The translations under genes and the position numbers were made by a program. The notes under the pieces were generated by a model that was not told where the DNA came from, searched no databases, and saw only the letters and a list, made by a program, of their open reading frames with translations. This document shows, piece after piece, positions 5,665 through 48,089 of a stretch of 64,000 nt of DNA; position 1 is the stretch's first letter; each line of letters opens with the position of its first letter. The stretch is from IMG/VR virus record IMGVR_UViG_3300034072_000758, positions 310,001 to 374,000 of that record; one strand, 5' to 3'.

Positions 5665-8367
5665 ATGGCGGAAATATCTGATCAACAATTAGGTGACTTA
5701 ATTACGGGCTTGAACAGGCACACGGGTGCTATGAACAAGCTTACGACAAAGCTTGGCAACACAGAGGTTGAGTTCAAGTCGAAGAGTTCTGCCCTTAAGC
5801 ATATTCAAAGAGACCTGAAAGACACTAGCGAGAAGCAAGTTTCTGCGACCCGCAAAATGTACAACAGCATGAAAGACGTAAACTTCGGTCTCGAAGGGCT
5901 GTCTTCTATGTTGGTTAAAGCCGGTGGCTTCGGCCTCGTCTTGGGTGAATTGGTCAATTGGGGTAAGGAAGCCACACAATCGTTCCGCGAGCTTTCCGAT
6001 GTAGGTATGAACTTCGGCGGAAGTATGGCGGTTATGCAAACCGCCGCTGCTTCGGCTGGTCTTCCTCTTCAACAATTCTCCAAGCATTTGGTAGAAAATA
6101 ATAAGGTCATTGGTCGCATTGGCGTAAAAGGCTTCTCCGACATTCAAAAGCAATTCCGTGGACTGGCTGAAAAGTCCGGTATGTACGGTATGTCTCTTGA
6201 CCAGTTGATTTCGTTCCAAGGGGATTATCTGGAAACGATGCGTCTGTCTGGCGGTTTGGAGCGCGTGAACGCTCAACGTCAGGCTCAAAATATCAATGAG
6301 TTTGCTGCTTCGGTTTCGGCTATGGCTGGGATCACAAACAAGTCTCGTAAAGAGATTATGGAAGCTACCAATGCCGCCCTGCGTGACAGCACCGTAAATG
6401 CCGCTATGCGCCTGAACGCGGCTAAGGGGATGGGCGAGTATAACACTGCCATTAGAAGCGCTGTGGCCGATCTGGCGGCTCAACAAGGTGTAGCTGGTCA
6501 ACTTCTCTCCAAAGGGTTGGCGGACACATTCAGCCATTTCGGTCAGGCTCAATTGACCGAGTATGGTAAGATGATGGTCAATGCGGGTGTTGGTCCCGGC
6601 GTCGAGATCATGAATGAGGCTGCGCGTCGTATTGAAGCTGGGGCGGATGCTCATGATGTGGCTATGGATGTCACCAATCAGTTGAAGGACTTGCTTGATA
6701 ATCCGGCCTATCTCCAATCTCTTCAATTACAAGCGGCTGCGGGTAATGATGCGGCCAAGCAAGTGCTCGCCATGTCTGAGCAAATGCAAAAGTACACGGC
6801 GGCGGATCGTGCCAAGCAATTGAAGGAAAAGAAGCAAGCCGACATCATGACCGGTTTCTTCACAGCCTTTGAGTCCATCAAGAACACCATTTTCGGATCA
6901 TTTATCGAAGGCGTCCTTGCGCCGTGGATCGACAACATGGGTAAGTTCGATTCAGCTAAATTTATCGAGAGCTTCCAAGAAATCGCGCCGATGGTTGGAA
7001 AATTCGGGAAAAGTATCGGCGAACTGATCAAGAGCTTTATCGGAACTCCGGGGAAACTCGAAGCAACCGTGAATGTGGTTCTTGGGGCAATCAATGGCAT
7101 CATGGTCATGGCCAAGGGAATTGGGGCCATTGCTGGTGGGTTTATTAATGCCATTTCAGCGGTGAATAATACGCTTACCGCGATCACAGGTGATAATGGT
7201 TTGGGAGCTATCTTGACGACCATTTCAACCTTTGCTGCGCTCTGGGGCGGTAAGAAGCTCATAGATATGGCCGTAAACGGCGTCCAGAAATTCTTCGGCT
7301 TCGAGAAAAAAGATGTCACTATTATGGGTGGCGAAATCACCATCAACGGCGCGGACATGGTTGGTGATGCTATGGACGAAATCACCGGGGGTAGACGTGG
7401 GCGCAGAGGCCGTGGTGGGCGACGTGGGCGAGGGTTGGCCAATAGAGCCAAGCGTTTGTTCAACATGGGTGGAGGTGGTGCTAAAGCCGCCGCTGCGGCT
7501 GGTAAAGTCGGACAAATCAGAGAACTACTGAAAAGCGCTCCACATTTGGCCAACGATCCACGTTTCGCCAAAATTGCTCAATCTGTTGGTATGGGAATAG
7601 ACGATCTCGCTCCGACCGCCGCTAAGGCAACCGGTTTGATAGGAAAAATCATGCCCGTAATCAACGATAGTGGTATTGCGAAGTCTCTTTCAAAAAAGCT
7701 TCCATTCATCGGTACGGCCATTTCTACAGCAATGGCCGCTGGTAGCGCTATGGACATCTATAACCAGATGAAGGCTGGAAAGATCAGCCCTGAGCAAGCT
7801 AAGAAAGGTCTCACGAAGCTTGGTGGTAGCGTAGCTGGTACGGCGGCGGGTACGGCTATCGGGGCAGCTATTGGAACACTCATCCCTATCCCGGTCGTTG
7901 GAACCCTCTTGGGAGGGGCCGTGGGTGGTTGGCTGGGCGGTATGGCCGGGGAGGCTATTGCTGGTAAGGGCTTCGACATTGCCTCAAAAATGAAGATGCC
8001 GGGTGTTGGCGCTATGCTGGGTATGGGCGCGGGCGCTATGATACCGGGTGGAATGGCTATTGGTGGTATGGTTGGTGCGAAGTTCGATAGTGACCGTGCT
8101 AAAAAGGCTGCTATGGGGACCGCTGGTGGTGTTGCTGCTGCGGGTGCTGCTGGGGCGGCGGCTTCAAAGTTGACAGAAACGAAAGTCACTGAACCAGTCA
8201 AGAAAGAAGCTGCGGCCCCTCTACAATCGGCTAATAATGGCGATCTACGAGCGTTGACAGATGAAATGCGTCGTGTTGGTGATTTGCTAGAACAACTTAT
8301 CAGAACCGAAGGTATTATTGGTCGAGAACAAATTCAGGAATTGAAAAAACTCCGTCCGGCGCAGTAA
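5665..8367 (+). CDS. Tape-measure-like virion protein
   Basis: 900 aa, helical Ala/Gly-rich, hydrophobic segments, RG-rich patch, glycine zipper; late promoter; directly upstream of portal. Confidence 0.6.
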   Translation: MAEISDQQLGDLITGLNRHTGAMNKLTTKLGNTEVEFKSKSSALKHIQRDLKDTSEKQVSATRKMYNSMKDVNFGLEGLSSMLVKAGGFGLVLGELVNWGKEATQSFRELSDVGMNFGGSMAVMQTAAASAGLPLQQFSKHLVENNKVIGRIGVKGFSDIQKQFRGLAEKSGMYGMSLDQLISFQGDYLETMRLSGGLERVNAQRQAQNINEFAASVSAMAGITNKSRKEIMEATNAALRDSTVNAAMRLNAAKGMGEYNTAIRSAVADLAAQQGVAGQLLSKGLADTFSHFGQAQLTEYGKMMVNAGVGPGVEIMNEAARRIEAGADAHDVAMDVTNQLKDLLDNPAYLQSLQLQAAAGNDAAKQVLAMSEQMQKYTAADRAKQLKEKKQADIMTGFFTAFESIKNTIFGSFIEGVLAPWIDNMGKFDSAKFIESFQEIAPMVGKFGKSIGELIKSFIGTPGKLEATVNVVLGAINGIMVMAKGIGAIAGGFINAISAVNNTLTAITGDNGLGAILTTISTFAALWGGKKLIDMAVNGVQKFFGFEKKDVTIMGGEITINGADMVGDAMDEITGGRRGRRGRGGRRGRGLANRAKRLFNMGGGGAKAAAAAGKVGQIRELLKSAPHLANDPRFAKIAQSVGMGIDDLAPTAAKATGLIGKIMPVINDSGIAKSLSKKLPFIGTAISTAMAAGSAMDIYNQMKAGKISPEQAKKGLTKLGGSVAGTAAGTAIGAAIGTLIPIPVVGTLLGGAVGGWLGGMAGEAIAGKGFDIASKMKMPGVGAMLGMGAGAMIPGGMAIGGMVGAKFDSDRAKKAAMGTAGGVAAAGAAGAAASKLTETKVTEPVKKEAAAPLQSANNGDLRALTDEMRRVGDLLEQLIRTEGIIGREQIQELKKLRPAQ

Positions 8368-37760: not shown

Positions 37761-38147
37761 TTGCGGTGCAAAAGGTATTCCATCTGTGAAAAATATATGA
37801 TAGGAAATCGTATGCTCACCATAGTCAATGATATGAAAGATAACGAGGAAGTTGCCGGGGCATTGGACCGGATGTACGATACCATATGGAATAAGTATAC
37901 CGAAACTTCGTGCTCAAATCGATGTCATGCTAGATTATTAGTTCCTTACAGCTTAGGTGATTATTCTATAGTCTTTTACGGCCCCACGTCAGACATCGGT
38001 AAAATATTATGGAGAGATTTGGGAATTGAAGTCGTCATGACACAACCAAAACATTCGGTTTCGCACGTAATTTTAAGGACATATATGGAAAAAAGTAAAG
38101 AAGACTTGGAAGAGGATTTCATAGTATTTCTTTTGTCTTTAACGTAA
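37761..38147 (+). CDS. Hypothetical protein (start uncertain)
   Basis: ORF. Confidence 0.5.
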   Translation: MRCKRYSICEKYMIGNRMLTIVNDMKDNEEVAGALDRMYDTIWNKYTETSCSNRCHARLLVPYSLGDYSIVFYGPTSDIGKILWRDLGIEVVMTQPKHSVSHVILRTYMEKSKEDLEEDFIVFLLSLT

Positions 38148-38201
38148 CTTGACAAATATCAAACATATTATATGATGATCTTGAACTGAGGGAGACAAAA
38201 T

Positions 38202-38447
38202 ATGCGAATCACGATAAACAATATCAACAAAGCTCTTGCTGATGCTGGGATCAACGCCGAACTCATCAAGGGTAAGGGTTATTTCTATTTCTTCGGCGAT
38301 GATGTTGATACCTGTAACACCACCTCAGTCTACGTATATCGCCTGACTTCATTCACTATCGATCAGTGGGTCAGGGAAGCTACTAATCTGAAAGCCGAAC
38401 ACGAGCGTAGCCGTTCATTCTTACTGGATGATGCGGCGATACTGTAA
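38202..38447 (+). CDS. Hypothetical early protein
   Basis: TTGACA..TATGAT promoter, GGGAG SD. Confidence 0.7.
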   Translation: MRITINNINKALADAGINAELIKGKGYFYFFGDDVDTCNTTSVYVYRLTSFTIDQWVREATNLKAEHERSRSFLLDDAAIL

Positions 38448-38451
38448 AAGA

Positions 38452-38613
38452 TTAAGTCTGGATGCGCCACTTTCCATTCGGATCGCGGACCACTTTTCCT
38501 TTTCCACCGGCTTGCTCAAGCTCTTGAGATAACCGAACCAGTTCAGCATAGCCGCCTACTTTACGGGCGGCTGATGCGACAGCTTGCTGTTCCTGTTTGG
38601 TGGTGACGATCAT
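38452..38613 (-). CDS. Small hypothetical protein (53 aa), not in the ORF track
   Basis: MIVTTKQEQQAVASAARKVGGYAELVR...DPNGKWRIQT. Confidence 0.5.
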   Translation of the reverse strand: MIVTTKQEQQAVASAARKVGGYAELVRLSQELEQAGGKGKVVRDPNGKWRIQT

Positions 38614-38629
38614 CGGATTTCTTGGAAAT

Positions 38630-38703
38630 TGGAGCGGGTAGCGAGAATCGAACTCGCACGATCAGCATGGCAAGCTGACAGGCTACCACTACATCATACC
38701 CGC
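38630..38703 (-). tRNA. tRNA-Gly(GCC) with CCA
   Basis: GCGGGTA...TCAGC-TTGCCAT-GCTGA...TACCCGC-T-CCA. Confidence 0.93.
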
Positions 38704-38705
38704 GT

Positions 38706-38799
38706 AGCGGGGAATGCTTCTGTTGCCAAGTGCATCCCCAAAACTCCGGTTAGCGACAATTAAGCCGCCAGAGCCAAGACTACGTTATCGTTGTCAGTT
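38706..38799 (-). ncRNA. tmRNA-like fragment lacking the tRNA-like domain (tag frame DNDNVVLALAA* plus pseudoknot)
   Basis: Tag 38795-38760; GAGT..GGGGATGC-ACTT-GGCAACAGAA-GCATTCCC pseudoknot with the same architecture as in the main tmRNA; TAAATA at 38810-38805. Confidence 0.7.
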
Positions 38800-38842
38800 G
38801 ATTATATTTATCATAGACAAATATCAAACGCAACTAAAAAGT

Positions 38843-39214
38843 CTAATTTCTTTGACCACCATCAAGAATCAGATGAAAGAAAAAATCCTCCAACTCTTCT
38901 TCGGATTTCCAATTACGAATCTTATAACTAACGATGTCCCAATTATCCCAATCTTCGCTGGTTCGGTACAGCTTACCGTAACTTTGCCATTCTCCGCCCT
39001 TATGAGGCCCATAGGTGATGCTGATCACAAAGAACTCGTGGACAGTAAAAGTAAACCGGGTAAGACTGTGAATGTGCTCGTATATAGGTTTCTTGGAAGT
39101 CTTATGGTATCGGGCCATAATACGATATTCTTTATCGTCTACTGACAATAGATACCCATTTGGATACACATTCGTTTCCAATAGAATACCAGCAATGGCC
39201 TTGGTAATAATCAT
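38843..39214 (-). CDS. Hypothetical protein
   Basis: Coupled ORF. Confidence 0.6.
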   Translation of the reverse strand: MIITKAIAGILLETNVYPNGYLLSVDDKEYRIMARYHKTSKKPIYEHIHSLTRFTFTVHEFFVISITYGPHKGGEWQSYGKLYRTSEDWDNWDIVSYKIRNWKSEEELEDFFFHLILDGGQRN

Positions 39215-39633
39215 ACCAACATTCTAGCAGTAACTAGAAAATCGTCAAGACCTTCATAGCTCTTGGTAGTTGTGATCATACAAATTCTTCTAACGAGTTC
39301 ACGATGATCCGTAAGAATAATGTATAGGGCGTCTTTTCCGAGGTTCGCCCACTCCATGTGTAAATGGATTGAGAATTTGAATTTACCCGGAGAACTAATA
39401 TCCAATCGCCCGGTATATTTGTGATTATATGGTTTGATGTAATTCATCACCAAATCACCATTTGGCGTCTTTAAGACCCGGCGTCTGGAATCACGATCTC
39501 GAATTACATTACCGTATGGAGAGACGGGTAGTAAATCATTGTACAATTTGATCATGGCGCGGGCCAAATCAATATCACCGGGGTTCAACTCGAATAACTC
39601 ATCACCATCTTTATCCAGTTGATTGATACTCAT
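39211..39633 (-). CDS. Hypothetical protein
   Basis: GAGGGG SD right after tRNA-Ser. Confidence 0.6.
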   Translation of the reverse strand: MSINQLDKDGDELFELNPGDIDLARAMIKLYNDLLPVSPYGNVIRDRDSRRRVLKTPNGDLVMNYIKPYNHKYTGRLDISSPGKFKFSIHLHMEWANLGKDALYIILTDHRELVRRICMITTTKSYEGLDDFLVTARMLV

Positions 39634-39645
39634 AGTAAACCCCTC

Positions 39646-39735
39646 TGGCGGAAGCGGTGGGATTCGAACCCACGGAGGACTTTCACCCTCGCAGCTTTAG
39701 CAAAGCTGTGCTATCGACCACTCAGCCACGCTTCC
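39646..39735 (-). tRNA. tRNA-Ser(GCT) with CCA
   Basis: CAGCT-TTGCTAA-AGCTG, long variable arm, G73. Confidence 0.93.
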
Positions 39736-39737
39736 AT

Positions 39738-39926
39738 TTAAAAGTCGTTATTCAACGACTTCTGTTCTGTTGTCTCATACTTGTAGTTCTTTTTCAACCA
39801 GTCCCGACATATTTTCATATGCCAGTCCCGTTGATTATACGCCTTATCACTACTCAGTTCCACATAATCACTTGCGATATATTGGATAAGCTGTTCGGCA
39901 GTCAATTGATCTGTGTACTCACTCAT
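39738..39926 (-). CDS. Small hypothetical protein in the tRNA operon
   Basis: ORF between tRNAs. Confidence 0.55.
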   Translation of the reverse strand: MSEYTDQLTAEQLIQYIASDYVELSSDKAYNQRDWHMKICRDWLKKNYKYETTEQKSLNNDF

Positions 39927-39938
39927 GGACGTATCGTA

Positions 39939-40160
39939 TCATGTTAAGTCAGATTTTTCAATTTTTAATATAAGCAGTATTTTTTCATCATCGGTTAAGC
40001 TCTCAGCCATACTAATTTCCTCATATACTGCTGGACAACCGATACGAAGGGACGTTACTTCATCAAGCATAAGTTCGAACGTAAGTGTACCTCGCTCAAT
40101 TCCACTTACGTAGACTTGAATTAACATACACCAAGCTTTGAATATTTGCTCATTAGTCAT
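39939..40160 (-). CDS. Small hypothetical protein in the tRNA operon
   Basis: MTNEQIF...; ATG overlaps the CCA end of tRNA-Cys. Confidence 0.5.
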   Translation of the reverse strand: MTNEQIFKAWCMLIQVYVSGIERGTLTFELMLDEVTSLRIGCPAVYEEISMAESLTDDEKILLILKIEKSDLT

Positions 40161-40234
40161 GGAGTTCCCGATAGGATTCGAACCTACATAAGACGGGGTT
40201 GCAATCCGCCGCATAGCCTTTCTGCCACAGGAAC
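40160..40234 (-). tRNA. tRNA-Cys(GCA) with CCA
   Basis: GCGGA-TTGCAAC-CCCGT, U73. Confidence 0.9.
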
Positions 40235-40253
40235 ATAACCGGATTATACCGGG

Positions 40254-40342
40254 CGGACAATGGGGGATTCGAACCCCCGGAGGACATTACTGCCCTCACT
40301 CGCTTTCCAAGCGAGCGCGATAGACCGCTCTGCCAACTGTCC
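40254..40342 (-). tRNA. tRNA-Ser(GGA)
   Basis: CTCGC-TTGGAAA-GCGAG, long variable arm, G73 followed by CCC. Confidence 0.92.
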
Positions 40343-40600
40343 TTACTTTTGCCATATATGAGACTGTTCATCAACCTTTACCGGAAAGGTATGAACAGTC
40401 GTGCGAAAAAGAAAGTCCGATCCCATCTGACCAACAAGTCGATCAGTAAATGCTTCTGGGGTATAGTGATCGTTTACCCCAGCTAGGATCGCCGTCTTCA
40501 ATATGGCTTCGCATTCGTTGCTATCATCAAACTTATCCATATCGACAAACCATAAACGGCTATTCCGATCATTATAAGTTTCAACAACAGCATATATCAT
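40343..40600 (-). CDS. Hypothetical protein in the tRNA operon
   Basis: Coupled to the Nudix gene. Confidence 0.6.
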   Translation of the reverse strand: MIYAVVETYNDRNSRLWFVDMDKFDDSNECEAILKTAILAGVNDHYTPEAFTDRLVGQMGSDFLFRTTVHTFPVKVDEQSHIWQK

Positions 40601-41097
40601 TTTTGCCTTTCGAACCAGCTTTTAACCACATCGGTATGAGACCCGAAGCAAAGTTCTTCCGGTTCCAAAATGGCTCGGATTGCTGGCACTTCATTGGTTG
40701 GAACGAAGTCTTTCAAAACTTGTGCCATCGGAATAGGCGTCTTAGCTTCGCAAAAGGCCATCATATTACGACCGTTGTTGTATGAACTTATCAGACGAAC
40801 ATCAACCGGGTCAATAACCAGTCCAGTTTCTTCCACAAGCTCACGTACCGCAGCATGTTCGATAGAAGCGTCAGAAAGCTCTTGGAAGCCACCTACGAGC
40901 GCCCAGCCGTCCTTACAAGGTTGAATGCCTCGTTGGGCTACCAGAAGGCCCACAGAGCCTAATGGGAACGATACCGGTAAGAGAAGTACAGCAACCCCGA
41001 TTGGGTTGATGAATGTGATGTTGCCGCAGCTTGAACAAGCCTTGGGGTACTCAGTCGCGGTATGCTCGGTGCCGCAGAATTTACAGAACTTGTCCAT
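40597..41097 (-). CDS. Zinc-ribbon Nudix hydrolase
   Basis: FCKFCG..CSSCG..F.NP; WALVGGF...AAVRELVEETG. Confidence 0.88.
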   Translation of the reverse strand: MDKFCKFCGTEHTATEYPKACSSCGNITFINPIGVAVLLLPVSFPLGSVGLLVAQRGIQPCKDGWALVGGFQELSDASIEHAAVRELVEETGLVIDPVDVRLISSYNNGRNMMAFCEAKTPIPMAQVLKDFVPTNEVPAIRAILEPEELCFGSHTDVVKSWFERQK

Positions 41098-41122
41098 TTA
41101 TATCGCCAGAATTTTTACGGAG

Positions 41123-41207
41123 CGGAAGCGGTGGGATTCGAACCCACGGAACCTTACGGTTCGGAAGTTTTCAAGACTTCTGGGATAAACCTCTCCCCCA
41201 CGCTTCC
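41123..41207 (-). tRNA. tRNA-Ser(TGA), no CCA
   Basis: GAAGT-CTTGAAA-ACTTC, long variable arm, G73. Confidence 0.92.
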
Positions 41208-41214
41208 TTAAATA

Positions 41215-41421
41215 TTAGAAATGTCGTCTTCTGACTTTTCTTACTATAGAATCAACCGCTTTTTCCTCAGTCGGTTGGCCATTCACTATTATAACTACGG
41301 TGTCAGCCTGTCCACCTAAGTCAGTGACCGCCTCTTCCGCTTCGTATAATGCTTCTTTTGATGTTTCGGCGTTAATTTTAGATTTCGAACGAAAGACGTA
41401 TTCTACTTCAAATTCAGCCAT
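41215..41421 (-). CDS. Small hypothetical protein in the tRNA operon
   Basis: MAEFEVEYVF... after GAAGG. Confidence 0.55.
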   Translation of the reverse strand: MAEFEVEYVFRSKSKINAETSKEALYEAEEAVTDLGGQADTVVIIVNGQPTEEKAVDSIVRKVRRRHF

Positions 41422-41496
41422 AACACGTAGACCTTCAACACGATTATTACTCTTTTTACGTCTAACACGATGGTAAAGACTGGTCAATTTATTTTG

Positions 41497-41586
41497 TGGC
41501 GGATGGTGAGGGATTTGAACCCCCGGTTCCTTTCGGAACGCCAGTTTTCGAAACTGGTGCAATCAGCCGGACTCTGCCAACCATCC
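41497..41586 (-). tRNA. tRNA-Ser(CGA) with CCA
   Basis: CCAGT-TTCGAAA-ACTGG, long variable arm, G73. Confidence 0.93.
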
Positions 41587-41587
41587 G

Positions 41588-41662
41588 TGGACTATGATGG
41601 AATCGAACCATCGCTATCGTTGAGTTACAACGACGACCTATCCTTTACAGGTCTGATAGCCC
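41588..41662 (-). tRNA. Atypical tRNA-like RNA: Ala-type acceptor (G3.U70, A73) with nominal AAC anticodon
   Basis: GGGCTAT/ATAGTCC-A; 5-bp D stem GACCT/AGGTC; TCGTT-GTAACTC-AACGA; canonical T arm. Confidence 0.7.
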
Positions 41663-41673
41663 TTAATTTTAAT

Positions 41674-41762
41674 TGGGGGACGGGTGGGATTCGAACCCAC
41701 GGAACCTTCTACAAGACCCTCCCGCGTCAATCGGGACACCTTAAGCCACTCAGTCACCGTCC
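41674..41762 (-). tRNA. Atypical tRNA-Ser(TGA)-like gene (6-bp acceptor, C discriminator, CCA)
   Basis: GGACGG/CCGTCC-C-CCA; TCCCG-ATTGACG-CGGGA; long variable arm. Confidence 0.65.
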
Positions 41763-41767
41763 ATCAA

Positions 41768-41980
41768 TTAAACCGTCTGTTCTTCGATCAAAGACATATG
41801 CTTCCTGATCCAACGCATAAAGAACAATCCTTTATCCTTGGTCAAGAAGCGGGCAGTCCCGCAATCGGAGATCGGAACCGGAAACTCAAACCCATCTTCG
41901 CAGCGATAGATCAAGTTGCCGTCCTGATAGTGAACGAAGTTTACTTCGCCTTTTACTCTTGTTTTAATGTCAGCCATCAC
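41768..41980 (-). CDS. Small hypothetical protein in the tRNA operon
   Basis: ..GNLIYRCEDGFEFPVPISDCGTARFL..DK..FFMRWIRK; AAGGG SD. Confidence 0.7.
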   Translation of the reverse strand: MMADIKTRVKGEVNFVHYQDGNLIYRCEDGFEFPVPISDCGTARFLTKDKGLFFMRWIRKHMSLIEEQTV

Positions 41981-42000
41981 TTTACCCTTTCATTCAGTGA

Positions 42001-42084
42001 TGGTGTGTCGTGATGGATTCGAACCACCGTGCCTTTCGGATGGGGGTTACAACCCCACGCAATCAACCGCTCTGCCAACGACAC
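42001..42084 (-). tRNA. tRNA-Tyr(GTA), copy 2, with CCA
   Basis: TGGGG-TTGTAAC-CCCCA, long variable arm, A73. Confidence 0.9.
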
Positions 42085-42096
42085 ATAAAGGATTAA

Positions 42097-42220
42097 TCGA
42101 CCCCTCGCCTTCGGGCTTTTACCGCTGGTCATTAGGCTACCGGAGAGGAGTTTCCGTAGCCTCAGCTTACTATGTGCTCACCCCGTTTGGAGGCATACCC
42201 CTACTAGGTTAAAGTAAGCA
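42097..42220 (-). ncRNA. Candidate structured RNA between the two tRNA-Tyr genes
   Basis: Stems GCTTACT/AGTAAGC, AGGCTAC-GGA/TCC-GTAGCCT, GACC/GGTC; no ORF. Confidence 0.45.
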
Positions 42221-42227
42221 CTTCATT

Positions 42228-42312
42228 TGGTGTATGGTGCTGGATTCGAACCAGCGCGCCTTTCGGAACAGATTTACAGTCTGTCGGTATCGACCAACTC
42301 ACCCAACCATAC
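42228..42312 (-). tRNA. tRNA-Tyr(GTA), copy 1, with CCA
   Basis: ACAGA-CTGTAAA-TCTGT, long variable arm, A73. Confidence 0.92.
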
Positions 42313-42313
42313 G

Positions 42314-42385
42314 TACTCGGTAATGGAATCGAACCATTATCTTCGGAGCCACAATCCGACGCTCTTACCGTTGAGCTAACCAAGC
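42314..42385 (-). tRNA. tRNA-His(GTG), alphaproteobacterial type without G-1 (G1.U72, A73)
   Basis: U at -1; GCTTGGT/ACCGAGT-A; TCGGA-TTGTGGC-TCCGA. Confidence 0.9.
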
Positions 42386-42404
42386 ATAGTTATAAGATTC
42401 ACAA

Positions 42405-42416
42405 TGTAAAAGAACA
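42405..42416 (-). promoter_or_regulatory. boxA-like antitermination element
   Basis: TGTTCTTTTACA versus rrn boxA TGCTCTTTAACA, preceded by a hairpin (42415-42466). Confidence 0.5.
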
Positions 42417-42467
42417 TGTCTCATACACGATACAAGAAGAGGCTTCTTGCTTCATTAATGAGACATT

Positions 42468-42544
42468 TGGGGTGACCAACGGGATTCGAACCCGCGCTTG
42501 GAGATTCACAGTCTCTCGTGCTAACCGCTAACACTATGGCCACC
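42468..42544 (-). tRNA. tRNA-His(GTG), canonical G-1:C73 type with CCA
   Basis: G-GTGGCCA/TGGTCAC-C-CCA; anticodon loop CTGTGAA. Confidence 0.92.
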
Positions 42545-42554
42545 ATAAAGATCG

Positions 42555-43167
42555 CTACAGAGCTAACATCAGTCGATCAACTCCAATCGCCCAACCAATA
42601 CCTTCTGAGTATCGGCCACCACCGGCAATCTGTTTTTGTGCTCCAAGTTTGGAACACTCTGCTTCGAAACCTTCTTCAACATAATAGGTCAAACCGCGCT
42701 TAACCGAGTCCGTGAATGAGTATTCGACGCCAAGCTTGTCTAAACACAACTTCAAAAGCCTCTTGGCCTCTTCTGTCGAATTGTCAACTTCACCGAGGAT
42801 TTCCACACCAAATTGGGTGAACTCTCGATAACGACCAGCTTGAGGTCGTTCGTAGCGATAGCACCGGGAGACGTAGAAAATCCTCTTGGACTTACTTGTC
42901 TTTGACCAGTTATCCCGCCAAAGTTCTTGGACTAAGCCGGTGACTTCGGGGATCAAACATACCGGACGGTTTGCCTTATCCTCGAAAGCCCACATTTGAT
43001 TGATGATCTCAGACCCCGCCTTGTCGATGAACGTTTGTTGTTCCCACAAGGCTGGAAGAATCACTTCCTCAAATCCAGCTTCAATGAAGAGACCCCCTAA
43101 GAGCCTCGATTACACGGACGTAGGACTTAGCTTCGTCCCCTTCCAAAATTCTCGTACCTCGTAACAT
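42555..43167 (-). CDS. hisS: Minimal catalytic-domain-only histidyl-tRNA synthetase (about 203 aa); needs a +1 shift near 43093-43101
   Basis: MLRGTR..; GFEEVILP (motif 1), LIPEVT, YRYERPQAGRYREFTQFGVE (motif 2), RGLTYY, GGGRY, GWAIGVDRL (motif 3); no insertion or anticodon-binding domain; frame break at CTT AGG GGG T. Confidence 0.85.
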
Positions 43168-43183
43168 TCCATTCTCCAAAAAC

Positions 43184-43208
43184 AAAAAACCCGCCAAGAC
43201 TGGCGGGC
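43184..43208 (-). terminator. Attenuator terminator T2
   Basis: CCCGCCA-GTCT-TGGCGGG-TTTTTT. Confidence 0.85.
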
Positions 43209-43211
43209 ATT

Positions 43212-43239
43212 AAAAAACCCGCCTAATCGGAGCGGGTTT
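43212..43239 (-). terminator. Attenuator terminator T1
   Basis: AAACCCGCT-CCGATTA-GGCGGGTTT-TTT. Confidence 0.85.
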
Positions 43240-43277
43240 AGAAGCTTCTATGATTTTCAGTTAATCATATAGTCGCG

Positions 43278-43340
43278 TCAAAACCCACCCTTGCTAGAGT
43301 GCGAATAAGAGCAGCTATGTGAATACGACATGAAAGTCAT
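43278..43340 (-). CDS. Attenuator leader peptide MTFMSYSHSCSYSHSSKGGF
   Basis: AAAGGA SD; ATG ACT TTC ATG TCG TAT TCA CAT AGC TGC TCT TAT TCG CAC TCT AGC AAG GGT GGG TTT TGA; 3' end GGGTGGGTTT complementary to the T1 left arm. Confidence 0.85.
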   Translation of the reverse strand: MTFMSYSHSCSYSHSSKGGF

Positions 43341-43420
43341 TGTAGCAGTTCCTTTGTTACCAGCGGGGGTGTGATAGGGCGCACCCTATAACGACGACTT
43401 TTTCCCTCGCCATCTTTTTC

Positions 43421-43450
43421 TATTTAGCATCTTTCGCAAAAACGTGTCAA
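43421..43450 (-). promoter_or_regulatory. Promoter of the leader-hisS-tRNA operon
   Basis: TTGACA (43450-43445)-N18-TAAATA (43426-43421), also readable as TTGACA-N16-GCTAAATA. Confidence 0.7.
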
Positions 43451-43463
43451 TTTATTTTTTAAA

Positions 43464-43766
43464 TTAATTTTTGCGGGCGTTGTAGACGAATCTCCCAACC
43501 TCTTTATTATTATGAGAAGCGATAACAATGGTCGTCGCAAACGTGTCAATATCGGAGTTATCATCAACCGGTGGCTGAGACATTGTTAACTTATATCCAT
43601 ATTTTTTAGATAAATCGACAAACTCTTTCAATTGCTGACTAGAATTTCGTCCAGCAATACCACCAAAATCAAGACGCAGATAATTATTACTTGGGTTGAT
43701 GTCTTGAACCGAAGCCTCATTCAACACCATCTTGTTTTGAATTTCTCTATACCATTCGTTGTCCAT
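43464..43766 (-). CDS. Hypothetical late protein
   Basis: TAAATA-N5-ATG; VLNE motif. Confidence 0.65.
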   Translation of the reverse strand: MDNEWYREIQNKMVLNEASVQDINPSNNYLRLDFGGIAGRNSSQQLKEFVDLSKKYGYKLTMSQPPVDDNSDIDTFATTIVIASHNNKEVGRFVYNARKN

Positions 43767-43814
43767 GCTTGTATTTATTTGACTTTTAGTAAAGTTGTAT
43801 GTATAACAATATAC

Positions 43815-44570
43815 ATGAAAAGATTACTGATCCTCAGCCTTGTGCTGGCCTCCTTCTCTACACCTTCCTATGCGGCTCAAAAGAAGCCGTTGCCTAATGC
43901 TGTCTGTGCGCCACTAATCAAACATGTCAGCGTCATTCCGGGGCAAATGATTTGTCGTGCTGGGTACGTGGCGATCTATGACGCTCGCAACCGTATTCCA
44001 GAAATGGTGATATACAATAATGACCGAGCAAAGCTGTCAGCTTGTGGGAAACGTACTGATCGGTTCCAGCGAGACGAGAGTGTCAGTGATGGTGCTCTCC
44101 CAGCAGACTACACCGGGACAGGATATGATCGCGGTCACATGGCTCCGAACAATGACATGATTTACGATCCAGTCATTGAAGAAGAGAGCTTCATCATGAC
44201 CAACATTGTTCCCCAAAAGCCAACCCTCAATCGTGGCATCTGGAAGGAACTGGAAACTCATGCTCGTGAAAAATCATACGCGGTGGGTAATCTAACAATT
44301 ATCACCGGGGTCATCTATCGCCCGAATAATGCTCGCCTCAAGGGGCGGGTTCTGATCCCAGATGGCTTCTATAAAATATTGGTCGATCATAAAGCTAAGA
44401 CGACCGAGACATATATCATGTATCAGAACGACAAGACCGGGCCTATTTCATCCTATCTGAGCACTCGAAAAGAAGTCCAGCGCTTGACCGGCCATCGTTT
44501 TAACTTGGACGGTTATCAAGACGCCAAGTGGACAATCAGTTATCGAAACATCCACAAGGAGTGTAAATAA
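43815..44570 (+). CDS. Secreted DNA/RNA non-specific endonuclease (NucA/EndoG family)
   Basis: Signal peptide MKRLLILSLVLASFSTPSYA; DY...GYDRGHMAP, SF.MTNIVPQ...LNRGIWKELE, IPDGFYKI. Confidence 0.9.
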   Translation: MKRLLILSLVLASFSTPSYAAQKKPLPNAVCAPLIKHVSVIPGQMICRAGYVAIYDARNRIPEMVIYNNDRAKLSACGKRTDRFQRDESVSDGALPADYTGTGYDRGHMAPNNDMIYDPVIEEESFIMTNIVPQKPTLNRGIWKELETHAREKSYAVGNLTIITGVIYRPNNARLKGRVLIPDGFYKILVDHKAKTTETYIMYQNDKTGPISSYLSTRKEVQRLTGHRFNLDGYQDAKWTISYRNIHKECK

Positions 44571-44571
44571 A

Positions 44572-44599
44572 GAAAAACCCGCCAACTCGGCGGGTTTTT
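44572..44599. terminator. Bidirectional intrinsic terminator
   Basis: AAAAACCCGCC-AACTC-GGCGGGTTTTTT. Confidence 0.85.
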
Positions 44600-44601
44600 T
44601 A

Positions 44602-44739
44602 TTAGTCTTTCTTCACGAAAGGAGCCAAGAACGGAAACTTAGCCAAGAGCTTTGCGAGAAGGGCTTTAGCCCAAGCCGGTGTAGGCAAGAAGAACCAACC
44701 AAGAAACAGGCCAACGAGCAAGTACAGGATATTCATCAT
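44602..44739 (-). CDS. Small membrane peptide (45 aa), not in the ORF track
   Basis: MMNILYLLVGLFLGWFFLPTPAWAKALLAKLLAKFPFLAPFVKKD; GAGGTG SD; TAAATA upstream. Confidence 0.7.
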   Translation of the reverse strand: MMNILYLLVGLFLGWFFLPTPAWAKALLAKLLAKFPFLAPFVKKD

Positions 44740-44772
44740 AATTACCACCTCATAAACTGGTATAGATATTTA

Positions 44773-45006
44773 TCAGTGTGCGATGATTTCGTCTGTATTG
44801 AAAACCACGGGTAGGTCTTCAAATGTTTCGGGAAAATTGCTGGCGACCAGTGATTTATTAAAGATCACAATGGCTGGTGGATTGAACCACATAGTAACAC
44901 CTAATACTTTGTATTGTTCGACAAAACGATCCACGACCTCCCGAATTTCATCAGGAGATAGGTGTGGTGTTTCTACCGGGATCAGGTCTTCATATTGAGT
45001 ACGCAT
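44773..45006 (-). CDS. Hypothetical protein
   Basis: AAGGAG SD. Confidence 0.65.
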   Translation of the reverse strand: MRTQYEDLIPVETPHLSPDEIREVVDRFVEQYKVLGVTMWFNPPAIVIFNKSLVASNFPETFEDLPVVFNTDEIIAH

Positions 45007-45042
45007 AGTTTATTCTCCTTGGTCGTCTGTATAAATAAATGT

Positions 45043-45600
45043 ATGAAATGTTGCAACGAAAATCATCAGCACACTTTTAAGTGCCTGACCGAAGGGTATT
45101 TAGACGACGATAATACTCCTTACCGTCTGGATGAAATGTATTACAAAGATTTCATGAAGGAGATCAACCCAAACAATCTCCCTCACCGCGATTACGCACC
45201 TTTAATCAAGTATGTTCGATACGTTGCGACCAAAAAAGATACCATGAAATATTTTGTTCCGAACCATCTAAATGGCTGGAATACATTCATTCAATTCACA
45301 GAATGGGATGAACAAGTCAAGGACTTATCGATTACGCCACAAGAAGCCGCTCGTCTTCTATTATGGGGTGGTAACCTGAAACTTCACTGTCAATGTCCCG
45401 CCTACAAGTTTTGGGGATCGCAATACATCTTATCCCAGCTTGATTCGGCTATTGTACCGGAAGCTCGTTTCCCACACATGAGAAACCCCAATCTGAAAGG
45501 TGTGGTCTGTAAGCATCTGAACAGAACGCTTAAAGTTCTCCCATTCCATCTTGGGGATATGGCTACGCAAATCAAGAAACAGCGCCTTACTTTGAAATAA
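45043..45600 (+). CDS. SWIM-like zinc finger protein
   Basis: HCQCPAY...RNP...VCKHL (CxC...CxH); TAAATA-N5-ATG. Confidence 0.7.
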   Translation: MKCCNENHQHTFKCLTEGYLDDDNTPYRLDEMYYKDFMKEINPNNLPHRDYAPLIKYVRYVATKKDTMKYFVPNHLNGWNTFIQFTEWDEQVKDLSITPQEAARLLLWGGNLKLHCQCPAYKFWGSQYILSQLDSAIVPEARFPHMRNPNLKGVVCKHLNRTLKVLPFHLGDMATQIKKQRLTLK

Positions 45601-46207
45601 CCTCAAGGCACTCCGGTAACAGGTGGTAATATATGGGTTCATCACCCATGTAACCCAAATCTTTCGCTTTGATTTTGACAGTGACCGCGCCCCAAGGGGG
45701 AGTCATGACTTCGTGCGCGCGTCTGTGAGCCACCACGCATTTGATCCCAATCTCCGGGTAAGCGCTGGTGTGCCGGGGCCAGTTCGGGTGATCGCCGATG
45801 ATGCGGACCTTAGTACCATGAGGAAGTGGCTGAACGTAACCTTCCAGATGATCGCGGGGAATAATAAATTGCTCGAAATCGCGCTTGAACTGATCTTCTC
45901 TAAGTTCGCGCAAAATTTCATCCACTTCTTTGTTGGATGCGATTCTTTCGGCGAGGTCATCGGTAGATAAAGACGAATAATCGCGGCCAGCGCGGATTGA
46001 CATATAACGATGACCAAGCTCGTATTTCGACAATTTCACCACGAGAGTTTTTGTATCGCTCGCTTTTTGTCCTTGCTCGTTAGTGTAATGATAAAACCCG
46101 ATACGACCAATGAGGCCAGTCGGGTCTTCACATGTTTCATAAAACCAATTGGACGGTTTTTTGATGATCTTGACCGATTGATCCCAGACCAACTTAGATT
46201 TAGGCAT
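45587..46207 (-). CDS. Hypothetical protein with paralogous C-terminal domain
   Basis: C-terminus resembles that of 46545..47066. Confidence 0.65.
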   Translation of the reverse strand: MPKSKLVWDQSVKIIKKPSNWFYETCEDPTGLIGRIGFYHYTNEQGQKASDTKTLVVKLSKYELGHRYMSIRAGRDYSSLSTDDLAERIASNKEVDEILRELREDQFKRDFEQFIIPRDHLEGYVQPLPHGTKVRIIGDHPNWPRHTSAYPEIGIKCVVAHRRAHEVMTPPWGAVTVKIKAKDLGYMGDEPIYYHLLPECLEVISK

Positions 46208-46211
46208 CGAA

Positions 46212-46532
46212 CTACTCTTCACGAAACGCGGTTGGTAGACCGAACTTGGCCAGCGCGTCATCCAAAACAATTACCGCGTCGGATGCGCTGATGATTTTCC
46301 AAATAGCGCGGTTTGCGGGTAGCGTGATCTTGGACGCTGTATCGGGCAGAAGCTTTTCTGGATACCGAATACCATAGGAATCGATATTGTATTCGATCTG
46401 AACCTCGATGTTGGGCCAAGGATGACCGAAGGACGGTCCCTTATTGTCCCAAATCGCTGTCACGAACGACGATTCGTAAGTGTCCGCGATTTTCTTCATG
46501 TGATCGAAAAGGTCTTTGCCGGTCTTAGGCAT
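46212..46532 (-). CDS. Hypothetical protein
   Basis: AGGA SD. Confidence 0.6.
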   Translation of the reverse strand: MPKTGKDLFDHMKKIADTYESSFVTAIWDNKGPSFGHPWPNIEVQIEYNIDSYGIRYPEKLLPDTASKITLPANRAIWKIISASDAVIVLDDALAKFGLPTAFREE

Positions 46533-46544
46533 GGATTTATCCTG

Positions 46545-47066
46545 TTACGGGTTAATAACTTCCAGTTTATCTACATCGAGAAAATAGTAAAGTGGTGAAC
46601 CAGCACCATAACCCAGAACCTTGGGTCTAAATTTCACGACGACTTGTCCCCAAGCGGGGGCCATAGATGATGACCGGGCGACGATCATGCCCTCGATACC
46701 CACTTTAGGATAAGCGCACACATGCGTCGGCCAGCGTTCATGCTCACCAATTACACGAACCTTCGTGTTCGGCTTGATGGGGTATTCGTATGTTTCCAGA
46801 AGCTCGACCGGAACCACGATGTCCATGTCATCTTTATAACGACCGAGCGCTTCGTCTTTGAGGTAATATTCATCAAGACCACGATAATATTCTTGATCCG
46901 CCGCAGAAGTATACGGAACGTGGCGATTTACGTCATATTTCAGGACGGTAATCGTGGCCATCCCACCATTCACTTGTTTCACGATTCCGGTAGCCCCGGT
47001 CGGATCAGTGCTATATTCCCATTCGGGTGGCTGGGAGAGAATTTTTACAGCGTCTCCCTTAAGCAT
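46545..47066 (-). CDS. Hypothetical protein with paralogous C-terminal domain
   Basis: C-terminus resembles that of 45587..46207. Confidence 0.65.
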   Translation of the reverse strand: MLKGDAVKILSQPPEWEYSTDPTGATGIVKQVNGGMATITVLKYDVNRHVPYTSAADQEYYRGLDEYYLKDEALGRYKDDMDIVVPVELLETYEYPIKPNTKVRVIGEHERWPTHVCAYPKVGIEGMIVARSSSMAPAWGQVVVKFRPKVLGYGAGSPLYYFLDVDKLEVINP

Positions 47067-47325
47067 CGGTCGGCACTTTGCCGTTGATGATCGCTTCGAG
47101 ATCGCGGAATTGAACGTAGGTGATGTTGGGGTTCTGGATGACCGGCACGAATTTACCTTGGTCGGTGTTCCAGATTTCGGTCAGGATCGAATGCGTCCAC
47201 GTACCACCCAGCTTTTTCGTGCGCTTGATGAAAGCGCCGTTGGCGGAGACATTCACGCGGTAGATATAGTTGCCTTCGATGACTTTGTAGACAGTTTCGA
47301 TGGTGACGAGATCGCGCATTTTCAT
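47059..47325 (-). CDS. Hypothetical protein
   Basis: AGGAG SD. Confidence 0.65.
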   Translation of the reverse strand: MKMRDLVTIETVYKVIEGNYIYRVNVSANGAFIKRTKKLGGTWTHSILTEIWNTDQGKFVPVIQNPNITYVQFRDLEAIINGKVPTDA

Positions 47326-47429
47326 ATGATGTGTCTCCTGATATAATATGTCGATAGACTGACAATATCACAAATCGGTATTCTGTAAAGGCATAATCAC
47401 TAAATATTTTTCTCAGGAGAATATAAAAT

Positions 47430-48089
47430 ATGGCTACTTTTGAAGAAGTAAAAGAAAAAGCAATAGCAGGAAACGTCAAAGCACAGATCGCTTTGGGTGA
47501 ATATCACCTTAATAATGAGGAATATCATTTTGCTAAACACTGGTTTATCCAAGCATCCGAAAATGACGCACGTGGTCTTTTAGGGTTAGCGACGACTTAT
47601 GAAATGATGAAAGACCCGGCTGAGGCCGTGAAGGTATATCAACAGATGTATGAAAAATATCAGGATAAGAAAGCCCTCGATATGATCATCCTTCATGAAG
47701 AAACTGCCAAGCAATATCTAAATGCGTTAACATGGCTCATGAAGGGCGGTATTAAAGATTATTCCGATGAACACAAGGCCACTAAATTATCATTCATGTC
47801 TGTATGGGATTCTGGATCGTATAACGAACAAAAATTTGTATCCGTTCTGATCTTACTAGGTCTCACATCGATTATGGGGCTATTCGAGTTCAAGGAAATG
47901 GATGAACAGGAGTTCTATCAGTTGCTTGCTGATTTAATTGGAAATGTATACGGCATTAAGGACAAGAACAAAGCACCAGAATACATCAGTGATCATATAA
48001 TTAAGAATAACCATATGCCCGTGTATGGCTACTATCTTAAAGGAGAAATGGGTGACTATACTAGGATGATGATAAAATTGATCAATTAA
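47430..48089 (+). CDS. Sel1/TPR-like repeat protein
   Basis: AIAGNVKAQIALG..., A.HWF.QA, LGLA..YE......EAV..Y. Confidence 0.65.
   Translation: MATFEEVKEKAIAGNVKAQIALGEYHLNNEEYHFAKHWFIQASENDARGLLGLATTYEMMKDPAEAVKVYQQMYEKYQDKKALDMIILHEETAKQYLNALTWLMKGGIKDYSDEHKATKLSFMSVWDSGSYNEQKFVSVLILLGLTSIMGLFEFKEMDEQEFYQLLADLIGNVYGIKDKNKAPEYISDHIIKNNHMPVYGYYLKGEMGDYTRMMIKLIN

Follow-up and report, generated by a model that had tools for sequence, protein, structure and literature searches.

Organization of the leader region and the tRNA operon

The DNA analysed here, referred to as the window, is a 64,000-nt stretch comprising bases 310001-374000 of the 516,805-bp virus record IMGVR_UViG_3300034072_000758, which has direct terminal repeats and represents a distant relative of the 469-kb Sinorhizobium phage Phosso. 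On the minus strand of the window, gene P0002 ends at 43464 and is followed by a sigma70-like promoter sequence, with a -35 element, TTGACA, at 43450-43445 and, after a spacer of 15 nt, an extended -10 element, TGcTAAATA, at 43429-43421, which would place the transcription start at about 43414. Next are a GC hairpin, AUAGGGUGCGCCCUAU (43389-43374), and a C-rich segment, CCCCCGCUGG (43369-43360), which can pair with any of the three GCGGG-type segments. A Shine-Dalgarno sequence, AAGGA (43354-43350), lies 9 nt before the ATG of a 20-codon ORF (43340-43278, with the stop codon UGA at 43280-43278) encoding the peptide MTFMSYSHSCSYSHSSKGGF. Codons 5-16 of this leader, TCG, TAT, TCA, CAT, AGC, TGC, TCT, TAT, TCG, CAC, TCT and AGC, specify only Ser, Tyr, His and Cys (binomial p=3e-5). 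The last three codons, 18-20 (Gly-Gly-Phe), have the sequence GGGUGGGUUU (43290-43281).

Between the leader ORF and the first downstream gene there are three hairpins. An AU-rich hairpin of 7 bp, UAUGAUU (43269-43263) with AAUCAUA (43255-43249), is followed by two canonical intrinsic terminators that share a CCCGC/GCGGG core. T1 (43239-43212) consists of AAACCCGCU (43239-43231), a 7-nt loop and GGCGGGUUU (43223-43215), and is followed by UUUAAU. T2 (43208-43178) consists of GCCCGCCA (43208-43201), the loop GUCU and UGGCGGGU (43196-43189), followed by the U-tract UUUUUGUUUUU. Such stems are very common in phage terminators in general; for example, a loose tandem pattern hit at least 119 unrelated IMG/VR contigs. 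In this genome, however, only three same-strand pairs lie within 80 nt of each other among about 143 terminator-like sites (112 of them strong) in 517 kb, and the T1-T2 pair is the tightest. A bidirectional terminator 1.4 kb upstream (44572-44600) has the same CCCGCC/GGCGGG core as T2; only about five such cores with U-tracts exist in the genome, and three of them lie in this 1.4-kb stretch.

The first gene behind T2 has a Shine-Dalgarno sequence, GGAG, at 43177-43174 and an ATG at 43167, and encodes a HisRS-like protein (Pfam tRNA-synt_His, 2.5e-14) whose reading frame is interrupted: a 28-aa part in frame 0 runs to 43081 and the body lies in the +1 frame, to 42555. It is followed by an array of twelve tRNA genes (42543-38630), in the order His, His, Tyr, Tyr, Ser(UGA), Val, Ser(CGA), Ser(UGA), Ser(GGA), Cys, Ser(GCU) and Gly, with small ORFs between them, as identified by ARAGORN and by Rfam tRNA hits. 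Sub-threshold matches to alpha-proteobacterial and permuted tmRNA models (39.3 bits against a cut-off of 50, and 23 against 47) lie next to tRNA-Gly, at 38709-38863. No strong minus-strand terminator lies between T2 and 29271. Each of the 12 codons in the regulatory run of the leader can be read by a tRNA encoded downstream, including all four Ser isoacceptor types.

Alternative helices and the predicted effect of ribosome position

The preliminary description had proposed that capture of the T1 left arm by the end of the leader ORF would free the T1 right arm to pair with the T2 left arm, so that a single ribosome stall would disable both terminators. All of the elements on which this proposal rests are present, and every structural claim holds. 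GGGUGGGUUU pairs over 10 bp (including 2 G.U) with AAACCCGCUC (43239-43230), forming an antiterminator of -12.0 kcal/mol. The T1 right arm, GGCGGGU (43223-43217), pairs over 7 bp with the T2 left arm, GCCCGCC (43208-43202), across the 8-nt loop UUUUUAAU; this helix, designated X, has an energy of -15.1 kcal/mol, against -12.7 for T1 (9 bp) and -15.2 for T2 (8 bp). The AU hairpin, which had been suggested as a possible pause site, has -3.7 kcal/mol alone and more clearly stabilizes the antiterminator, within whose loop it lies, by a further -6.2 kcal/mol, to -18.2. The OFF state (hairpin, T1 and T2; -31.6 kcal/mol) and the ON state (antiterminator, hairpin and X; -33.3) are near-isoenergetic alternatives; the combination of antiterminator, hairpin and T2 has -33.4 kcal/mol.

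The pattern is more than chance. The complementarity between the antiterminator and T1 exceeds that of dinucleotide shuffles of the 101 nt upstream (p=0.008), and helix X lies in the top 1.4% of 12,426 pairings of other strong terminators of the same genome. The whole leader also folds better than shuffled sequences (z=-3.8), and its MFE structure already contains X, nested within a pairing of T1-left with T2-right.

To ask whether ribosome position determines the fold, we masked 28 nt around the A-site and computed partition functions. With the RNA made up to the end of T1, a ribosome stalled at codons 5-14 gave a probability of 0.95-1.00 for the antiterminator and at most 0.04 for T1, while a ribosome at codon 16 through the stop codon gave a probability of 1.00 for T1. 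With the RNA extended to the end of T2 and the antiterminator in place, the probability of X was at least 0.99 and that of T2 at most 0.01. The window of effective stall codons coincides with the Ser/Tyr/His/Cys run. In the absence of any ribosome the equilibrium state was mixed (T1 0.67), and the co-transcriptional simulation described below gave read-through, so that there is no clear "superattenuation" safeguard. In MFE structures with a stalled ribosome, the C-rich segment at 43369-43360 was paired with T1-right and later with T2-right.

The direct-path refolding barrier from X to T2 is 8.6 kcal/mol, which is modest but of the same order as the barrier from the antiterminator to T1 (11.0 kcal/mol), on which any such attenuator depends. 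In a crude, Kinwalker-like co-transcriptional simulation, with 8 hidden nt and barrier thresholds of 6-12 kcal/mol, the stalled cases gave the antiterminator at the T1 decision point in 11 of 12 parameter sets and X without T2 in 9 of 12, with T2 formed instead of X in the other 3. With an unimpeded ribosome, T1 had formed by the T2 point in all 4 sets (already at the T1 point in 2 of 4) and T2 in 3 of 4. The domino arrangement is therefore thermodynamically sound and kinetically plausible, but sensitive to parameters.

Leaders matching the downstream tRNAs in this genome and in relatives

What the preliminary description did not note is that the genes behind the leader are tRNAs matching its codons, and this correspondence extends well beyond the one locus. 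ARAGORN finds 57 tRNAs in the genome, in four main clusters, and each cluster is preceded by the same kind of promoter, a short ORF and a hairpin or terminator. The three further leader units, outside the window at 408201 (-), 424095 (+) and 479598 (-) in genome coordinates (window coordinates plus 310000), lie in front of the Glu cluster, the cluster of Phe, Ile, Met, Gln, Asn, Pro, Asp, Thr, Val and Ala, and the Arg/Leu/Lys/Trp cluster, and are referred to as units B, C and D. Each has a single hairpin or terminator. In unit B, MFAIREEREER precedes three tRNA-Glu genes. In unit C, a 46-aa leader has its first 31 residues after the start Met all drawn from the amino acids of its cluster. In unit D, MFALRLKLLRKWLRRPKGGTV precedes Arg, Leu, Lys and Trp tRNAs, with codons that match the individual anticodons; unit D also has a hairpin analogous to the AU hairpin, in the same place. 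The four leader ORFs end in TGA or TAA. tRNAs with the anticodon CUA (amber-suppressor type, labelled "Pyl" by ARAGORN) are present in this phage (genome coordinates 117291-117364) and its relatives, for example at 7000 and 7081 (-) of L154, a sequence of the relative G001, and at 446731 of Phosso.

A motif of the form TTGAC...TGnTA(A/G).. / TAAATAG precedes all four leader units of the genome and those of relatives. The same promoter type also precedes an ORF whose N-terminus looks like seryl-tRNA synthetase, and it lies directly before tRNA-Asn 440250 without any leader ORF (genome coordinates 468705 (-) and 440208 (+)).

Relatives were found through the HisRS-like protein, and their tRNA clusters were then located. 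None of the 25 HisRS-like homologues whose upstream regions were examined has the leader directly before that gene; the orthologous units sit at the head of the tRNA cluster instead. In four relatives the leaders again mirror their own tRNAs. For example, ..SSHSYCYSSSYHS.. precedes Ser, Cys, Tyr and His tRNAs, ..VTTTVVIITTV.. precedes Ile, Thr and Val, ..LLQQLQL.. precedes Gln and Leu, ..DEREED.. precedes Asp and Glu, and ..KLLRRRKWLRR.. precedes Arg, Trp, Leu and Lys. In the Ile/Thr/Val and Gln/Leu units of the relative G004 (L157 and L158), the leader ATG lies only about 6 nt after the -10 box (GATAAATAAAACC then ATG), and these leader mRNAs are probably leaderless. All 15 units are enriched for their own amino acids (binomial p from 3e-2 to 2e-7), and in each genome with three or more units the true assignment of leaders to clusters ranks first of all permutations (24, 6, 24 and 6).

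In 9 of 11 units, a G-rich stretch of codons right after the regulatory run is complementary to the 5' arm of the terminator beyond shuffles, and it always lies 36-63 nt upstream of that arm. Two units in relatives, G001_RLKW and G004_DE, showed no antiterminator beyond shuffles. The equilibrium mask analysis was uninformative for the full terminator in units C and D, because a -22 kcal/mol terminator always wins, but masks applied to truncated transcripts gave the same logic as above. Unit B (408201-408127) does not fit the antiterminator model: it is minimal, with 11 codons, its hairpin has a poor U-tract, and its stop codon abuts the hairpin, so that a stalled ribosome would have to occlude the 5' arm directly.

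The design seems to be confined to one subclade, comprising this genome, the relatives G001, G002, G004 and G005, and the contig of the orthologue L005. In Phosso and the Phosso-like genomes (G006-G009), tRNAs of mixed identity are interspersed with small ORFs, and no such leaders were found. Sorting of tRNAs by amino acid therefore goes together with the leaders.

Near-identical relatives were sought for covariation. Exact-pattern scans of IMG/VR for the leader end and for T2 found nothing, a gapped pattern in JGI metagenomes gave only two chance hits at the ends of ordinary genes, and searches with the two flanking proteins returned only the source record, an identical Logan contig and a 532-nt fragment that stops at the leader ATG. 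One informative natural variant was identified, in an unrelated public sequencing run labelled with an organism name rather than as a metagenome, indicating that relatives of this phage occur in several sample types. It covers 42924-43346 with 9 substitutions and a 3-nt insertion. Within 43239-43303, it changes two Ser codons synonymously, inserts one Tyr codon in frame, turns Lys17 into Met and alters only the outermost T1 pair, in a way that keeps pairing. T2 is untouched.

Units with two terminators

Five units have two terminators: the one described here, its orthologues in G001 (L154) and G005 (L167), and two non-orthologous units of G004, the Phe/Leu/Trp/Arg/Lys/Val unit and the Gln/Leu unit. 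In all five, each hairpin has its own U-tract and the T1 3' arm pairs strongly with the T2 5' arm (-13.4 to -18.4 kcal/mol, against -13.8 to -23.0 for T2). The four units tested against random terminator pairings lie in the top 1-4%. The three orthologues use the cores CCCGC, CCCGG and CCCCG, with the core identical in T1 and T2 within each genome, although the loops differ in length and sequence. RNAalifold on these three returned the fold that contains X, with 7 of 17 pairs compensatory. This is what selection for cross-pairing predicts, but T2 looks like a diverged copy of T1 in each genome, and duplication or gene conversion could also account for the shared cores. Two of the five orthologous Ser/Tyr/His/Cys units (L005 and L008) have a single terminator, as do units B, C and D. 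The second terminator is therefore dispensable, an optional elaboration.

Proposed mode of regulation

The best explanation for these features is a ribosome-mediated (leader-peptide) transcription attenuator in front of a phage tRNA operon, with two terminators wired in a chain. If the Ser, Tyr, His and Cys codons are read quickly, the ribosome reaches codon 16 or beyond and covers GGGUGGGUUU, so that T1 forms and, for polymerases that escape it, T2. If the ribosome stalls in the run because the matching charged tRNAs are scarce, GGGUGGGUUU is free to capture the T1 left arm, and the orphaned T1 right arm would pair with the T2 left arm as soon as it emerges, before the T2 right arm exists. 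Polymerase would then run into the HisRS-like gene and the tRNA genes, and the tRNAs made would relieve the stall, giving negative feedback. The operon is probably transcribed only when ribosomes run short of exactly those tRNAs. No RNA run clearly contains the locus, so that neither termination nor read-through is observed; these, the kinetic advantage of X over T2 and the sensing of tRNA supply are all inferred from sequence, modelled folding and comparison, and we hold the domino mechanism with moderate confidence.

It remains possible, though less likely, that only T1 is regulated, and that T2 is an independent, constitutive back-up terminator that caps expression, with the complementarity between them a by-product of T2 being a copy of T1. 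The resemblance of the two stems in every genome, the formation of T2 despite the antiterminator in 3 of 12 stalled simulations, the fact that X is not more stable than T2, and the existence of single-terminator orthologues all speak for this view. However, at equilibrium T2 is almost absent when the T1 left arm is held, X can form about 12 nt of transcription earlier than T2, and cross-complementarity is kept in five units with different cores while the loops diverged. Moreover, a constitutive strong terminator 11 nt before the Shine-Dalgarno sequence of the only route into a 12-tRNA operon would make the sensor pointless.

Another potential reading, which we consider unlikely, is that T1 and T2 are the two halves of one long composite hairpin (T1-left with T2-right outside, X inside) or a recent neutral duplication, with no switch between them. 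The MFE of the whole leader and of the T1-T2 segment is indeed the nested fold (-31.6 against -26.8 kcal/mol for T1 plus T2), and the RNAalifold consensus is nested. But T1 is complete and followed by six U before any T2 sequence exists, so it must act first co-transcriptionally, and both hairpins carry U-tracts in all five units. The arrangement is shared by three orthologues with diverged loops and cores, so it is not recent. Least likely of all, the promoter, short ORF and double terminator could form a self-contained gene for a small RNA or a 20-aa peptide, with the tRNA operon expressed by other means. Attenuator-derived RNAs and leader peptides can act in trans in Sinorhizobium (PMC6614838, PMC7298713), and a strong double terminator would release a discrete RNA of about 205-235 nt. 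There is, however, no room for a promoter between T2 and the gene start, and the leader peptides are not conserved in sequence; only their composition tracks the downstream tRNAs across 15 units, which a trans-acting product would not explain. A trans role could exist in addition.

Comparison with known attenuators

The mechanism proposed here belongs to classical leader-peptide attenuation, and the suggestion in the preliminary description that the element is unlike classical attenuators is overstated. The his operon leader of Salmonella and E. coli (Rfam His_leader, RF00514) appears already to use a chain of alternative helices (A:B, C:D and E:F versus B:C and D:E), in which capture of one strand propagates down the leader and a single ribosome stall is the only input. 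In his, only the last hairpin appears to be a terminator, while here the middle hairpin, T1, is itself a full terminator with its own U-tract, and the target is tRNA genes rather than biosynthetic enzymes. There is no sequence or structure homology to his (no Rfam hit). A search of 38000-48000 with the Rfam covariance models (E up to 1) gave no match at the gathering score to His_leader, Trp_leader, Leu_leader, Thr_leader, Phe_leader or T-box. On the element itself there were only sub-threshold hits to the trpB motif (34.4 bits, cut-off 59) and anti-hemB (25.5, cut-off 49.5), both on the terminators, and the weak Phe_leader, Trp_leader and Leu_leader hits lie elsewhere, on the 44.5-kb bidirectional terminator.

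Sampling of several amino acids by one leader is likely to have parallels in ilvGMEDA (Leu/Val/Ile) and thr (Thr/Ile), and the pheST attenuator would be a case of such control over an aminoacyl-tRNA synthetase. The present leader samples four amino acids and all four Ser codon families, and it precedes the tRNAs that read those very codons, in a virus where several such units with different specificities coexist in one genome. Two intrinsic terminators in series, with CCCG/CGGG-type stems and a potential antiterminator, have been reported for the rimP leader (PMC2965389). No leader peptide is described there, the two stems are inverse motifs rather than identical cores, and no single-input domino is proposed. 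The tandem attenuators of Salmonella mgtCBR (PMC3641672) and tandem riboswitches or T-boxes also place serial premature-termination checkpoints in one leader, but with one sensor (sORF or aptamer) per checkpoint, so that two inputs are integrated, whereas here one sensor is proposed to open both. T-box riboswitches likewise sense the tRNA charging state to control translation-apparatus genes by antitermination, but bind tRNA directly, without a ribosome. In full-text literature searches we found no description of leader-peptide attenuators on phage tRNA clusters, or of a chained double terminator with a single sensor.

Implications for phage tRNA supply

Why phages carry tRNA genes, and how they use them, is an open question, for which the current explanations are codon-usage compensation, replacement of degraded host tRNAs and escape from anticodon nucleases. 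The leaders described here imply that at least one phage clade does not express its tRNAs constitutively but measures, codon by codon, whether each tRNA group is needed. The two-terminator units would offer a natural design in which one input releases two serial terminators through strand exchange, giving low leak without a second sensor, which could be of use to synthetic biology.

More tentatively, a clade of giant phages might run a modular, self-sensing tRNA supply system, in which tRNA genes are sorted by amino acid into operons and each operon is switched on only when the matching charged tRNAs of the host fail. This could result from codon-usage mismatch, host shut-off or tRNA-cleaving defence nucleases, which would make the system an inducible counter-defence, with the domino double terminator as its tight-OFF version. 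In this possible scheme, the conserved frame break at a His codon in the co-transcribed HisRS-like gene would be a second, translational His-tRNA sensor.

In that gene (43167-42555), the 28-aa frame-0 part ends in ..ALRGSLH and a stop codon, and the body follows in the +1 frame. The same break occurs in about 20 of 27 homologues (among L001 and L003-L022), always just after NUU-CAY (Leu/Val-His). The His codon is kept even where the +1-frame residue changes (Ile/Thr), and the frame-0 stop lies at varying distance, while more distant homologues are unbroken. This looks like a programmed +1 shift at a slowly read His codon (CUU slipping to UUC). An independent Logan assembly has the identical sequence.
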